Source of the DNA: Piromyces finnis finn
Lineage: Eukaryota; Fungi; Neocallimastigomycota
Reading direction: 5' to 3'
DNA: 64,000 bases
Assembly: GCA_002104945.1 (NCBI GenBank)
Contig: MCFH01000006.1
Span: 682,001-746,000, forward strand
The position numbers were made by a program, and so were the translations under genes. Shown one piece after another: positions 46,952 to 57,609 of this stretch. The notes under the pieces were generated by a model that made no database searches, was not told where the DNA came from, and saw only the letters and a list, made by a program, of their open reading frames with translations. Every line of letters begins with the position of its first letter. The first letter of the stretch is position 1.

Positions 46952-49630
46952 TTATTTTTCAAAAACTCCTTTATCAGGGAACAAATATTCCATAATTTCA
47001 TGTAATTCTTGGCTAACTCTTGGTTCATTGTAATCATCATTAAAATTAAAAAATAAATAAGGTTCTTTTATAATATCAGAATAAAGTTTAATATTTCTAG
47101 TAGCATCATCAAATATTTGCCCAAATCTCATTGTTTTTTCTCGTAAATGATCTTCCACTATATGAAAGCCGTATTTTAGTATAGTTCTATTTCTATTTAT
47201 GACTTTATTATTATAATCACCTGTTGCTTCTTCATCTAAATCGTGAATATATTTTGAAGAATAAAATTTATCAAATAATTCTTCAAATCCTTTTTTGGAA
47301 GCAGTATATCTTATAAAGGCTTGATTTGCAAAAGGTGGAATAACATCCTCTGGATGTCTAAATTTATGAGTGAGAGTAATATCAATATAATTCTTAAATT
47401 TTTCTCTACTCATTGGGAATAGATCACGATACCAAACGTATGGTGAATGCTCAAGTTGATTTGTCCTAATATATCTTCCATAAAGTGATTTAATAGCACC
47501 ATTTGTCATTGCAAGAGAAGCAACAAACCTTTCACTCATAGTAGTTTGTGAAAAAGATTTTCTACCAACATTTTTAGCATATTGAATATCATTAATAAGA
47601 AAATGAAGTGCTAAAAAAAAATTTGGGAACCTGAAGTGTTGTGCTGCATTTGGGAAAAATATTTCTTTATCTTTTGGTTTATATTCATATCTCTTTTTTT
47701 TAGAATGATTAAGTTCTTCCTCTTCTATTTCTTCTATATTTTCTTCCTTTTCTTTACTTTCAGACACGTTATTATCTTTATTATTATTTTTTATTCTTTC
47801 AATTTCAAAAATTGACTCTGTATTAATTTTTTCATCTTTTTTATCTTCATTAATAGAATTTAGAGTAGCAGAAGTGGCTTTTGTTGTTGTAGTGGTAGTG
47901 GTATTTGTTGATGCTTTATTTTCATTTGAATTATAATATTTATTTATTTCTATCAACGCTTTGGTTATACATCGCGAATGATGCATGTTAATAAACTCAT
48001 ATGGAGCTTTTGACTTTAAGTAAGCAAGTAATTCTTGTATACATGGGGAAAAATCACTAACTAAATGTTTATTGTTCAGATATTTATAATAAGTTAATTT
48101 AGAAGTCATTTTATATTGATCTGAATGTTTATAAAATTTGTAGTAGAAATAAGGAAAACTTTTCTTTAATTCCTGTTCTTTATTAAAATACATTATATAT
48201 TCCTCATCAATATCATAAGATTCACCGCTTCCATAGAAGAAATAAGAAGGATGAACAGGCTGATTAAAGAAATAATCGTCATTTAACTGTATAAATTGTT
48301 CTGTCAAACCTGGAATTCTATCTAAATACCATTCAATAGCAAATGAATTAAATGTTGGGTTAACATCATTACCATTCATATCTTTTTTTGGTAAGATATC
48401 TTCTTGATTAATGATTTTAATTCTATCAAACTCAGTATCTAACCATTCTGGTGTTTGTCCAGGAGTTACAATAAATATTGTACCTTTATGCCATGGTAAA
48501 TATTTGAAAAGAGAACGTAAAGAAAATCTTAATTCATCCACACTCCTATCCCGATTGTCTGCTTTTTTAATTCCACCATTATATTTAGCCTTTTGTTCCA
48601 AATGAATAGGATCTGAACCATTTACCCATGTATACACAATAGATATATCAGCTGCCCATTGCCATTCCGGTTCTAATTCATCATGTCTTACACCATTTTC
48701 AACATCTCTTGAATATTTTAATAAAAATCTTAATTCTCTTTCATCATCGTAACATACCCTTTTATTTTGTTTATCTTGCTCGGAATTTATAGATTGAATA
48801 GCATCAGCATAGAGTTTATTTTTTAAATTTTGATATTCTGTTCTATTACTCATATTATCTAATGAAGGTATTGGAAAGCTACCAAATTTTATATCTTTCC
48901 AAAATATTTTATTTGGATCATAGTATTCTTCTAAAAGTTTTTTTTTAGTTAAATTTTCATAAAATGGTTTCAAACTTCTAAATTCATTGGTATCATCTAC
49001 ACCATTATTAGGTACACTCTTTTCCTTTTGTTTGTTCTTAAGTTTTCCAATAAAATCCTTTTGTTTGTCAAAGAATTTCATTTCTCTATTCCTAAATGAT
49101 TCTTTATTATCTATTAATTTATGATTTAAATGCCCATTCTTTTCATTAAAAATATCTTCAATTCTCCCTACCTTACTTATTCTATTATTTGGAATATTTT
49201 CTTTTTTTTTTTTAATTTCACTTTTATCTATATTTTCAATCTTATCAGTATTTTTATTCTCTATTTTATTTTCAATTTCATCAGCATTTTTATGTTCTTT
49301 TAAACTTTCTAATATTGGTTCAGATTTATAATTATCACTATTATAAATATTTTTATTATCAATTAGCTTATCAATATCTACGTCGGTGTTTGCTATTTCA
49401 AATAATATTTCATCTTCAATTATATCTTTAAACATATATTGAAAGAAAAAAATTTTTTAATATTAGTGTTAAGTAAAAAAATATTATATAGAAACTAATA
49501 GTTTCTATATACGAAATTACATACCTTTTTTTTTTCTAATTTGAGATTGATGATGTGATAATGTTATTAAAAAAACATTTATTAATAATATAATAATAAT
49601 CACAGGTGTAAATTTTATATGTTTAAACAT
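46952..49630 (-). CDS. Stealth-family hexose-1-phosphate transferase with N-terminal signal anchor, 2 exons
   Basis: CR1 IVYTWVNGSDP; CR2 ELRFSLRS...GQTPEWL...PTFNSFAIE...IPGLTEQFIQLNDDYFF; CR3 HSPYVWYR...KFRHPED; CR4 FFNFNDD. Upstream exon 49525-49630 encodes MFKHIKFTPVIIIILLINVFLITLS and joins by a phase-1 GT-AG intron. Confidence 0.9.
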
Positions 49631-52630: not shown

Positions 52631-54042
52631 ATGTTAAAAATTACACTTTCTTCTGCAATTGTATTATTGCTCTTGTTAATAGAAGTTGCCTTATCACAAG
52701 GGCTTCAAGGTTTCCCAAGAAATGCACAAGATGTTAAATTTTATGATATGGAAAAAATAGGAAATAGCCCAAAAGATGGTACTATATTATAAAATAATAA
52801 AATTTTGTTATTTTTCTTTATATTAATACAAATATATATAGTAAATTTCAGATTTGGTCCAGCAGATGTTCCAAGCATAACAGTAGATATTGTAAAAATT
52901 AAAGACCAAGAATCCAGTAATGCCTATATTACTAATAAATCAAAAATCAACATCAAATGGAATGATCCCAATTCAAATATAAATAATACTTATACTTTAA
53001 AACTTTTGTATAATGTTACCCAAGATTATACAACCACATATTTTTATTCATACAAAGATATAATAATTCAAGAAAATGTGTTAGCAAACGAATTTGAATA
53101 TAGAATACCAAAACTAGAAGAAAATTTTGTATATAATATTGCAGTTATTTCTGATTCAGTTGATAATTTACAAAAAAAACATATTGGAATATCAAAGACA
53201 TATATGTACAGTATGTATCTATAATTTTTATTTATATATTTTATGTTAGATTATTTCATATGGTGGAATAAAAAGATTTATTAATGTAAAAATAATTTTA
53301 ATAAATAGAACATATTGAAAAGGATAATTCAAACCAAACAATAGAAGAAAACCCAAAAAGTGGTATTAGTCCTATAGTCTATGTAATAATTGGTATAGTA
53401 GGATTAGTTATTATTGGTCTTGCCTTTTTATTAAGTAAAAGTTTTGGAAATAAAGATAGAAGCGAAGAAGAAGAAGATATCTACAGTTTGCCAATACAAT
53501 AACCAACATCACCAAATGGAGATTTTTCATATAGAAGAGATTCTGATCATGTTTCTGTTGTTACAGATGATACTGGAGAAGTATCATGGTCAAATTTAGA
53601 AATTGCTCAAACATCACAACAAACAAAAAATGAAGCAAATGATAAAGTCATTAGAACATTAGAAAGAGGTTTTAAGCGCGACGATAAAGACAGAAGTAAG
53701 AATGTATATTTATCTAATGAAAATCAAATATATAAAGTAGTAAGAATGTTTACTCCATCTGAAGAAGATGAAATCAAATTAAACATAGGAGATGAAGTAG
53801 AAATAACAGTTATATTTGAAGATGGTTGGTGTGAAGGTGTTAATAAATCCACAAATGAAGGTGGTGTATTCCCAAGAACATGTTTAGTTGAATTTGAACA
53901 ATATGCTTCTATGATAGAAAAATCAAAGAACTCTTTACTTCCAAGTAGAAGACGTTCAAAACGTAATTCTTATACGAATAGCAGTTGTCAATTCATAAAA
54001 TCATCAGATATATTAAATATTCCAAATGATATTCAAGAATAA
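52631..54042 (+). CDS. Type I membrane protein: signal peptide, beta-rich ectodomain, TM helix, cytoplasmic SH3; interrupted by an in-frame TAA at 53500-53502
   Basis: Exon 1 MLKITLSSAIVLLLLLIEVALS; exon 2 ~52842-53210; exon 3 from ~53309 with TM IVYVIIGIVGLVIIGLAFLL, then SH3 YKVVRMFTPSEEDEIKLNIGDEV...EDGWCEG...GGVFPRTCL in the same frame. Confidence 0.75.
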
Positions 54043-54680
54043 AAAAAAAAACATTAATATATATCATAAAATCATTATTAATAATTTTTGTCAATATTCT
54101 TATTTTATTAAAATTAAATATATAATAATCAGTAACAATGAAACAATATATAAATATAACATTTATAATATTATTAATTATAAAATGTTTAAAATTATAA
54201 AAAAAAAAATAGCCTAAAAAAATATACAATTATTCATAAAAAATAACAAAATAAAGAAATAAAAAATAAAAATATATAAAATATTGTAATAATATAATTA
54301 ATATATAAAAATAAATATATAAAAATAAATAAAAAAGTTTAAAAACAAAATAACAAAAAAATTTAATTAAAATATCTTATTATTAATCTATTTAAATTTT
54401 AATATCAATGTATTACAAAAATATTTTAAACATTAATTATAGCAATAGCTATAATATAAAAATTATGAATAAATATAAATAAAATATAAACTATATTTAT
54501 ATTCTTTAAAGTTGAAATAAATATAAATGTTTAAATTAGTTATTCATAACTTTTCCTGTTATTTTTAAAGGTAAATTTTTTGACCAATCATATTTATTTT
54601 TAATTACTCAATATATATTTAATAGTATCTTTTCTATAAAACATCTATAATTATAATAATATGTAGGAATTTTTAAATTC

Positions 54681-55098
54681 AAGAAAGTTTGGTTAAAAGC
54701 TTGTGTTTAGGGGTAAACAGACTTAATGAATTTAAATAATATTTTATAAAATAATCATAATTCTTTTGTTTTTTAAGCTTATTTATTTAATAAATGAATA
54801 AGCTGTAAAAGAATAAATTTTATTATATATTATTTAAAGGTCATTAAATAATAAAAATTTTTTTTAATTTTTATTTAACCCTTGGGAGGGTCTGAGAAAA
54901 ACCCGCAAAGTGTCCTTGAGGGACTTCGTATTAACAAATTCATAATTTATTATGAATGTATACGAGTGGATCACCAGAAAGCGAAAAATTGGAATAGGAT
55001 CTACGGGTGTAATGCTGGAAGTTCAATACGCAAGACATTTAATAATTTTTTATTATTAAATGAAACTCAATTCAGACTACTCTTTGACCAAATTTCTT
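54681..55098 (+). ncRNA. RPR1: Nuclear RNase P RNA
   Basis: CR-I GGGAGGGTCTGAG (54884-54896) and CR-V AACTCAATTCAGACTACTCT (55064-55083) closely match human H1 RNA (GGGAAGGUCUGAG; AACCCAAUUCAGACUACUCU). CR-IV AAGTTCAAT. Helices: P1 54681-54699/55082-55098, P2 CTTGTGTT/AATACGCAAG, P7 ACCCG/CGGGT, P8 GTCC/GGAC, P10/11 TGGATC/GATCTA, P19 CATTTAATAAT/ATTATTAAATG. Confidence 0.93.
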
Positions 55099-55330
55099 CA
55101 CAAAATTATTTAATTTAAAAATTATATAAGAAAATAAATATTTAATAAATAAATAAAAATTGAAATTATTGTATAAAAATAATTATTGATAACTAAATCA
55201 ATAATTATTGTTTATTATTAAATCAATAATTCTTTTGCAATTATTGATTTAATAATTATATTTAAGTAGTTTTATTACTTATGCAATATAAAATTATTTA
55301 CTTTTTTTTTTTTAAATAATAATGATAATA

Positions 55331-56430
55331 TTATTTAGCAATTGACGATAATTCAAGAGCTTCATTGACATAGTCTGTCTTTTTTATTAATTTTCTAGCG
55401 TCATCATAGTTAACCTTTACAGTACCAAATATTAAAGAAAATTAATTAAAAATAATAATAATAACATTTATATATATTATTTACCCAAACTCTTTCTCTT
55501 TCATCTTTTTCTGGCCATTCTTCGGCAATTTCAGTTACATGCATTTCGTACAATAAGATTTCAGAATGTAAATATTTTTTTTTGTCTTCAGATAATTCAG
55601 ATTTTTCAATATTGGTATGCTTTTTTATTTTTTTATATTGTTTAAATTTACCAAGTAATTTTACAATTTCACCTTTAACACCAGCTTCTTCCCTGCAGTT
55701 TAATATATAATTATATGTTAATGTTTTACTTTAATAAAAAAAATACATAATTTATATATATATATATTCCTAACTATGTTTGGAAAATAAAAATTAAATA
55801 ATAACCATGTTTCTCTCATAGCAGCATTAACGATAGTTTCATCATTCTCCCAGCCACCTTTAGGCTATATTTTTAAATTGTTTTATTTATGAATAAATAA
55901 TATCACACAATATAATTTTATGTAATATTATATTTATTGTTTTCCAACTTACAAAGACCCAACAGTCTTTTCTTTTTCGACTAAAATTGTACATGAATTT
56001 TTGATATTTTTCACACAAAAAAATGTTTTGTAAATAAATGATATAAAAATAACTAATAATTTATTTCGTTTTAGTTTACCTCGATATTAATAAAACTTTA
56101 CCGGTTTTAAGATCAATAGGAACACAGCCAGCAACCTTTTATGGGATATGTTTATATATAAGAATCTTATATAAAGTATTTTTTTTTTCAGAAATATAAA
56201 TTCAAGATTTAATTACTTCTCTAGCGCCTACGTCATTGTATACTTGCTATTTGTTAAATAATAGCATCAATAAAAATAATAATTAATATTATTTAATTAA
56301 TATAAATAAGAATTGTTATCAATTCTTTATAACTTTTAATAGAATAATAAAATGAAATATGCAAAAAATATATATATATATTAATAGTCACTTTTGCTCT
56401 TCCAGATCTAGCTTTTGGTAAATATTCCAT
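55331..56430 (-). CDS. DDP1: Nudix hydrolase, DDP1/Aps1 (diphosphoinositol-polyphosphate and ApnA hydrolase) type, 7 exons
   Basis: ARSGRAKQVYNDVGAREVAGCVP resembles yeast Ddp1 AREGRENQVYS..GARLVAGC. Nudix box GGWENDETIVNAAMRETWEEAGV; C-terminal WPEKDERERVW. Confidence 0.92.
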
Positions 56431-57609
56431 AGGGTTATCAATATTATCGGTCATTATTATTTTATAATAATTATTTGTATATATGAAATTTTATAAATTA
56501 TATTTTTATAATTATTCTTTTAAAAATAAATTGTTACAAAACTCGCAAAAAAAAAAAAGTAAAACAATCTTAATGTCTAAAGTGAATGATTGAAGTAATT
56601 ATCAGATATTCTGAGATATATATAATGAAATATTTGAAATAACCCGATAAAATAAAGTTTTATATATTAAAAGATTCAACCATTAAGCAAAGTAAGATTA
56701 CAATTTTTTATATATAAAAAAAGAAAAAAAAATTAATAACACTTAATTATTTAACATTTACTAATGTTTAAAATGTTTTTTAAAATTTATTATCATATTA
56801 TTAAAATAAATTTAATATTTTTATTTACCTTTTCTCTTGAATCTTTTATTTTAAAATATAAATTTCATTAAATTTCTATTTAATAATTTTTTCAATAATC
56901 TTTAATATTACTTTTTTTTTCTGTATAATTTTTTTTTTTTAAATGAACCTTATTTACCAAATCTAAATTATTAAATAAATTTTAAATGTAATATATTTTA
57001 TTAGTATATTTAATATTATTAATTTCAAAAAAAAAAAAGTAGCAGCATCGGTATTATAATAAATATAAAAAGTAAATAAAATGGCTAGTAATTATATTAA
57101 AAATTATCATATAATATTATTTTCATAATTATATTTTTGTTTATAATCATAGGTAATAGTTGGTTTTACATTTAAAAGTAGTTATATACATAAATAATTA
57201 TCTTTTAAATAAAACAATATAAAAATAAATTTTATAATGTTTTTATAATTACAAAATTATGGATAATATTATATAATCATAATAAACAAATATTAATCTT
57301 TTTCCATAATTAAGAAGATTATAATAATATTTAATAACCAAAGGATGCCTTTATTACTTTAAACAACATACACAAATAATATTTATATTCATTTATTATA
57401 GCATCAAAAAGAGTTCTTTAGTGTTTTTCATTTATATATTTTAAATGTATATTAATCCACTTTATTACAATCTGTATACCCAATCATAGTAAATAAAATA
57501 TTATATATTATTTAGTAAAATTAAAAATTGAACATTTTTAATTATTACAACTTTATTATTTTTTAAATTTTAATATAGTTTTAAAAACAGTATTTTTAAT
57601 TATTTAAAA

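Follow-up and report, generated by a model that had tools for sequence, protein, structure and literature searches.

Nuclear RNase P trims tRNA precursors, and the gene for its RNA subunit is essential. The yeast RPR1 and human H1 RNAs are textbook members of this family, which is represented in Rfam by the RNaseP_nuc model (RF00009). A P12 helix is typical of nuclear RNase P RNA, but it is variable and not catalytic. In a survey of RNase P RNAs, P12 was found in all types of the molecule, with Mycoplasma fermentans and the Thermoproteaceae as the only exceptions named (PMC2858038). The RNase P RNA of Plasmodium has a highly extended P3 domain, and its P12, eP8', and eP19 are extended as well; the RNAs of Giardia and the microsporidia have a reduced P12 region and also a small P3 (PMC1636426). 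Animal RNase P RNA genes have been assigned to the type-3 class of RNA polymerase III (Pol III) genes on the criteria of a PSE, a TATA element 21-27 nt upstream, and a 3' poly-T of 4-5 nt (PMC4287351). For the anaerobic gut fungi, a full-text literature search joining RNase P RNA with Neocallimastigomycota returned just a 2009 phylogenomics study that mentions each a single time, neither of them in the title or abstract.

Here we describe a locus at 54681-55098 (+) of a 64,000-nt stretch of Piromyces finnis contig MCFH01000006.1 (the window). The locus is almost certainly a working gene that specifies the nuclear RNase P RNA subunit of an anaerobic gut fungus. The family is very well known, and a standard RNA-family search detects this new and well-delimited member. 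The predicted RNA resembles the other nuclear RNase P RNAs of RF00009 in the order of CR-I to CR-V and in having P1, P2, P3, P4, P7, P8, P9, P10/11, and P19 (Table 1). It departs from them in having 8 nt where P12 would be, a P3 domain of 175 nt compared with about 45 consensus positions, and a G for an A in CR-I, and also in its T runs, since no T-run follows the 3' end while T6 and T8 runs lie inside the gene.

Table 1. Features of the RNase P RNA locus in the window and of the related copy on contig C167 (copy B; L002 coordinates)
Feature	Position	Strand	Remarks
CCAAT element GACCAATCATATTT	54582-54595	+	CCAAT at -97
TATA-like boxes (TATAAAA, TATAAT, TATAAT)	54635-54658	+	about -46 to -23 from 54681; putative function
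RNase P RNA gene	54681-55098	+	delimited by P1 helix; RF00009 core 54840-55088
P1/P2	54681-54697 with 55083-55098	+	G54687 bulged
Joining segment AAGCUUGUGUUU	54697-54708	+	corresponds to Rfam consensus AAGCUCaucgu preceding P3; invariant in the three lineages
Expanded P3 domain, AGGGG to CCCUU	54709-54883	+	175 nt, 14% GC
P3 base AGGGG/CCCUU	54709-54713 with 54879-54883	+
78-aa ORF, TTG start	54882-55118	+	over ribozyme core; mechanical open frame
CR-I GGGAGGGUCUGAGA	54884-54897	+	holds P4 5' strand 54892-54896; invariant in all sequences
P4	54892-54896 with 55071-55075	+
P7	54901-54904 with 55005-55008	+	A-U to G-C in Neocallimastix
P8 hairpin	54912-54924	+
P9	54926-54965	+	lengthened to 40-nt hairpin, 26 inserted nt relative to model; U-A to C-G in Neocallimastix
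P10/11	54966-54972 with 54997-55004	+	encloses CR-II, 8-nt linker, CR-III
CR-II ACCAGAAA	54973-54980	+
CR-III UUGGAAU	54989-54995	+
CR-IV AGUUCAAU	55020-55027	+
P19 hairpin	55035-55062	+	two compensatory pairs and three one-sided pairing-preserving changes, all in E2 or Neocallimastix
CR-V	55064-55082	+	holds P4 3' strand 55071-55075
3'-flank 17-mer TATTTAATTTAAAAATT	55107-55123	+	invariant in the three lineages
Copy B, first 14-mer ATCTGCGATGGAAT	L002 1333-1346
Copy B, RNase P-derived part	L002 1347 to about 1761		starts AAAGTTTGG (= window 54684)
Copy B, A-rich linker	between RNase P part and retroposon		9 nt
Copy B, full-length retroposon	L002 1771-2292		followed by about 25 A
Copy B, second 14-mer ATCTGCGATGGAAT	L002 2317-2330

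Conserved core, fold, and orthologues

The RF00009 model matched the window at 54840-55088 (+) with 72.8 bits, compared with a gathering score of 28 (E 8.6e-19), in an alignment that spans model positions 1-301, i.e., the full model. This was the only Rfam match in the 64-kb window. When the whole genome was searched with Rfam (56.5 Mb in 232 contigs, about 18% G+C and thus 82% A+T), only two RNaseP_nuc matches were obtained, the window locus and a copy on contig C167, and no better RNase P RNA candidate was found elsewhere. The initial annotation, a reading of the DNA letters, had described the gene as hidden, which is too strong: the ordinary Rfam model picks it up readily, even if that model delimits only 249 of about 418 nt.

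The five conserved regions lie in canonical order on the plus strand and are all invariant in P. finnis, Piromyces sp. E2, and Neocallimastix. These regions and the complementary helix strands listed in the initial annotation were all found at the places it had given. CR-I is one base off the usual GGGAAGG, with G in place of the consensus A. In the P4 pseudoknot between CR-I and CR-V, CUGAG pairs with UUCAG. Conservation of this pairing in relatives had been named beforehand as a test of the assignment; the pairing is kept, and both P4 strands are invariant in the three lineages, so that P4 offers no covariation to score. Folding of the 418-nt sequence gave -102.9 kcal/mol (z = -6.08), and none of 100 shuffled sequences was as stable. 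The P1 helix comprises 14 bp with one bulged G and has an energy of -13.9 kcal/mol, a stability reached by 0 of 500 shuffles. The match, the fold, and the stability of P1 are far beyond chance.

In the proposed architecture, the catalytic half would consist of P1/P2, P3, the P4 pseudoknot (CR-I with CR-V), and P19, and the specificity half would consist of P7, P8, P9, and P10/11 with the CR-II/CR-III loop. Acting with shared protein subunits, the RNA would remove the 5' leader of pre-tRNAs, by analogy with the family. The fold and the family assignment were computed here, and the catalytic role comes from established family knowledge. Among the protein partners, the genome encodes Rpr2/Rpp21 (58.5 bits), which is specific to RNase P, and Pop1 (55.6 bits).

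The orthologous loci were reached through contigs obtained around orthologues of the neighbouring Stealth protein. RF00009 scored 74.5 bits in Piromyces sp. E2 (L124) and 75.8 bits in Neocallimastix (L131), and the full genes are 418 nt long in P. finnis, 412 nt in E2, and 482 nt in Neocallimastix. The gene order Stealth, SH3-domain gene, RNase P RNA is kept in all three, and the synteny comparison suggested in the initial annotation accordingly finds the RNase P RNA in the same neighbourhood in both relatives. RNAalifold predicted 121 pairs, 14 of which, in P1, the long P3 arm, P7, P9, and P19, show compensatory double changes. Eight pairs of the core helices vary among the three species, and seven of these eight are paired in every one of them. 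Because only three lineages contribute, this covariation is good qualitative support and not a statistical test.

The neighbours in the window are a gene for a Stealth-family (CR1/CR2) protein at 46952-49435 (-), a gene with introns and a terminal SH3 domain at 52631-54042 (+), on the same strand and 640 nt upstream, and a convergent gene at 55336-56454 (-), which we infer to be a NUDIX gene solely because Neocallimastix has one at the equivalent place. The closest named relatives of the Stealth-family protein are in Neocallimastix and Piromyces sp. E2, and paralogues occur in P. finnis; the 98-aa SH3 exon, submitted to a protein search as a single exon, had no match. Searches with the intron-containing neighbours, the SH3 gene and the putative NUDIX gene, used their exons singly.

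More distant material was also inspected. One syntenic metagenome contig (L125) stops short of the RNA gene, and the contigs around distant Stealth-family proteins of Anaeromyces (P0023) and Neocallimastix californiae (P0007) were rejected, having another neighbourhood and no CR-I/CR-V pair. A metagenome scan with the 16-nt CR-I word returned 120 stretches and no gut-fungal relative. Only one of these stretches (L095:603, +, on a contig of 49% GC) also has a CR-V-like word, 160 nt from the CR-I word; it has no Rfam match at the gathering score and is probably a chance occurrence. The exact 28-nt CR-II/CR-III word had no match in genome_contigs or viral_contigs.

The C167 copy, the gene ends, and competing assignments

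The second RNaseP_nuc match of the genome (copy B) shares 99% identity with the window gene between 54681/54684 and about 55100; outside these limits the two are unrelated. The two copies differ in the 54880 region of the window, at 55096, and by a TA indel; copy B includes the entire P3 domain and scores 72.0 bits compared with 72.8 for the window copy. Such near-equal scores and sequences would be compatible with a working gene on C167 and a dead pseudogene in the window, but the surroundings of the two copies make this very unlikely. The window copy retains the ancestral neighbourhood together with the conserved CCAAT, TATA, and 3' elements. Copy B is without the conserved flanks and without the first 3 nt of P1, carries a T6 run in the 3' strand of P1, and shares with a poly(A) retroposon the interior of one 14-nt target-site duplication. 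This single duplication brackets a composite of RNase P RNA, linker, SINE-like retroposon, and poly(A), which argues for one integration event. Judged from this sequence organization, copy B is a processed chimeric pseudogene and not a second gene.

The composite may stem from a template switch during reverse transcription, from the retroposon RNA to the RNase P RNA, or the two RNAs may have been ligated first; both routes have been described for U6/LINE-1 chimeras and in Magnaporthe (PMC2104539, PMC4476161, PMC6789731). Copy B is like the mammalian U6/LINE-1 and Magnaporthe chimeric retropseudogenes in that the small RNA copy lies 5' of the retroelement in the same orientation and in having a poly(A) end and one target-site duplication around the composite. 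It is unlike them in its 5' partner, which is RNase P RNA, in its 3' partner, which is not LINE-derived but a SINE-like element present in full length (about 522 bp), and in the 9-nt A-rich linker at its junction (PMC4476161, PMC6789731, PMC2104539).

The retroposon itself (L002:1771-2316, corresponding to C167 ~1001396-1001941) is a SINE-like, poly(A)-tailed element of about 522 bp that starts with GTCGTTCCAG. The genome holds at least 47 matches to it, most at 99-100% identity, and other copies (L145, L146, and L147) have their own 11-13-bp target-site duplications directly at their ends. The element looks recently active. A tRNA gene had been suspected beside copy B from a GGTTCGA-type word, but ARAGORN found none there, and the word belongs to the head of the retroposon.

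Because a retrocopy of the full-length sequence exists, the window gene appears to be transcribed, and as a genomic fossil copy B provides indirect evidence that the product is a full-length RNA. The retrocopy also holds the entire P3 expansion, which argues that the expansion is not removed from the RNA.

The retrocopy bears equally on the ends of the RNA. The RF00009 alignment begins at 54840 with an improvised 4-bp "P1" (GUCA with UGAC) and misses the true 5' strand of P1; the true start lies about 160 nt upstream. The model starts where it does because it is unable to bridge the very large AT-rich insertion in P3 (175 nt). Taken literally, the alignment would limit the RNA to the 249 nt of 54840-55088 and leave the upstream 160 nt as unrelated spacer, a reading that we regard as very unlikely. 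It is opposed by the conservation of 54681-54713 in all three lineages and by the fit of this segment to the Rfam 5' consensus (P1, AAGCU, aggGG), in which 54697-54713 (AAGCUUGUGUUU followed by AGGGG) corresponds to the part leading into and opening P3. The long P1 and the P3 arm both covary, and the retrocopy includes the whole 5' part. Across the three species P1 has 14-17 bp with duplex energies of -13.9 to -19.8 kcal/mol, and E2 and Neocallimastix show compensatory changes in it, with two pairs double-changed and several G-U/A-U switches.

The ends proposed in the initial annotation are therefore essentially right, since they agree with a P1 that covaries in the three lineages and fall within 3 nt of the limits of the retrocopy elsewhere in the genome. 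Taken together, the sequence comparison suggests that the RNA ends at about 54684 (or just upstream) and at about 55100-55105, for a length of about 415-420 nt. Since the standard model skips the 175-nt P3 and recovers no more than 60% of the gene, automated annotations of these genomes are likely to be 5'-truncated.

RNase P and RNase MRP RNAs are built alike in P1-P4 and are grouped in one Rfam clan, and in this genome an identical 14-mer promoter-like element precedes both genes. That the window locus is the gene for the paralogous ribozyme, RNase MRP RNA, is nonetheless highly improbable. Clan competition retains RNaseP_nuc at the window locus with 72.8 bits, and the P-specific CR-II and CR-III are present there. 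The one RNase_MRP (RF00030) match of the genome is a separate locus, C112:204895-205284, which scores 69.1 bits and carries MRP-type conserved regions, including the GAAAGUCC motif in CR-I. Because the MRP RNA is encoded at this distinct locus, the window gene is assigned to P and not to MRP. The comparison of RF00009 with RNase_MRP was the check proposed in the initial annotation, and its choice of P over MRP, made on the conserved regions, is borne out. The RNase MRP RNA gene (L003:1501-1890 on the minus strand) contains large AT-rich insertions and an internal T6, and a T5 lies downstream of it.

The idea that the locus codes for the 78-aa protein of ORF 54882-55118 has in its favour only the presence of the open frame itself (78 codons, TTG start), and it can be dismissed, since the 5.8-billion-protein collection holds no identical entry or relative, the frame shrinks to 32 aa (E2) and 59 aa (Neocallimastix), and substitutions track base-pairing and not codons. 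The ORF is thus incidental. The initial annotation had spoken of the gene as miscalled under this ORF, which goes too far; there is no sign that anyone called it, and no such protein is in the collection.

Expansion of P3 and replacement of P12

Constrained folding gave P3 domains of 175, 162, and 236 nt for P. finnis, E2, and Neocallimastix, respectively, compared with about 45 consensus positions. The domain is composed of the basal stem AGGGG/CCCUU, a conserved 5' internal loop UAAACAGAC, and a long irregular distal hairpin of about 125 nt. A second hairpin on the 3' side, small in P. finnis (about 54849-54876) and with the T8 run in its loop there, is missing from E2 and long in Neocallimastix. 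The arrangement of helix, internal loop, and helix directly 5' of CR-I is present, though enlarged, and eight pairs of the long arm show compensatory changes. Since only weak AT-rich matches to it occur elsewhere in the genome, the expansion is not a repeated element.

The P12 helix is absent. An 8-nt linker, GCGAAAAA at 54981-54988, joins CR-II to CR-III, and the segment from CR-II to CR-III is identical in P. finnis, Piromyces sp. E2, and Neocallimastix. In the RF00009 alignment, 68 unshown consensus positions of the P12 region stand against 3 here. The gut-fungal RNA is like that of Plasmodium, whose genome is also very AT-rich, in its extended P3, but P12 is extended in Plasmodium and lost in the gut fungi. 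With Giardia and the microsporidia the likeness is reversed: the P12 region is reduced in both, whereas their P3 is small and the gut-fungal P3 is hypertrophied. The AT-rich P3 of 162-236 nt, the replacement of P12 by 8 nt, and flanking signals that do not resemble those of a textbook Pol III gene are lineage-specific features.

Flanking signals and the transcribing polymerase

The CCAAT element lies at -97, -97, and -99 of the three orthologues. Apart from it, and from TATA-like boxes that can be seen by eye at about -39 to -31, their upstream flanks have little in common. The boxes of the window have counterparts at similar distances in the flanks of E2 and Neocallimastix (by eye). An exact copy of the 14-mer GACCAATCATATTT precedes the RNase MRP RNA gene, and the 14-mer is found 6 times in 56 Mb, compared with 1 for the reversed control. 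No Rfam match lies near the other four copies; by eye, two are apparently in paralogous coding sequence, one is about 190 nt before an apparent ATG-initiated ORF, and one is unexplained. One of the six copies, in L141 (C167:311840-311853, -), with no Rfam match, no obvious ORF downstream, and a slightly GC-richer patch about 250-330 nt away, could be the marker of an undescribed small RNA gene or could be due to chance.

On the 3' side, the 17-mer TATTTAATTTAAAAATT lies 8-18 nt past P1 in the three lineages, and the remaining flank does not align. It is absent after copy B and shows no genome-wide enrichment (50 occurrences vs 34 for the control). We suggest that it may be a 3'-end formation signal.

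The P. finnis gene contains internal runs of T6, T8, T5, and T6, and no run of four or more T is present downstream within 80 nt in P. finnis and E2 or within about 50 nt in Neocallimastix. For comparison, terminators of T4-T10 start 0-11 nt after 30 of 30 sampled copies of one tRNA family in the same genome, T8 follows closely behind both U6 genes, and T5 follows closely behind the MRP RNA gene. The two U6 snRNA genes, L136 (C90:380707-380814, -) and L137 (C154:509082-509190, +), score 69 bits each; in both, CCAAT lies at -89 and a TATA-like box near -30, and a T8 run forms the terminator. The 30 tRNA copies (L154-L183) are of one identical 74-nt gene and fall into a handful of shared flank types, so that this gene appears to travel with larger repeated units.

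Given its internal T runs and the lack of a 3' T-run, a conventional Pol III gene of this sequence would be expected to terminate prematurely. Type-3 genes have the poly-T after the RNA and none inside it, an arrangement that the window gene lacks, and by the animal criteria (PMC4287351) it does not resemble a standard Pol III unit. The gene is intergenic rather than placed in an annotated intron, and has its own conserved CCAAT and TATA-like elements. We therefore raise, tentatively and as something that we consider rather doubtful, the possibility that the gut-fungal RNase P RNA gene, and perhaps that for MRP RNA as well, is a free-standing gene not transcribed or terminated by conventional Pol III. 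Upstream, such a gene has the CCAAT box at -97, which we take to be NF-Y-like, and the TATA-like boxes; the conserved 3' 17-mer would take the place of the T-run, and the full-length RNA would be produced by reading through the internal T6, T8, T5, and T6. Candidate modes would be Pol II, or Pol III with unusual termination rules.

With this locus, the anaerobic gut fungi have an RNase P RNA gene whose limits are correctly set, and the chimeric retrocopy of that gene is a tidy case of a genomic fossil standing in for the mapping of transcript ends. With P12 lost and P3 hypertrophied across the three lineages, these RNAs offer a natural test of which peripheral elements are required in the eukaryotic enzyme. 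Which polymerase makes RNase P RNA in a genome of 82% A+T is a testable question posed by the flanking signals. If conventional Pol III is indeed not used, these fungi would combine Pol II-type or otherwise atypical expression of RNase P RNA outside the arthropods with a nuclear RNase P RNA that naturally does without P12.
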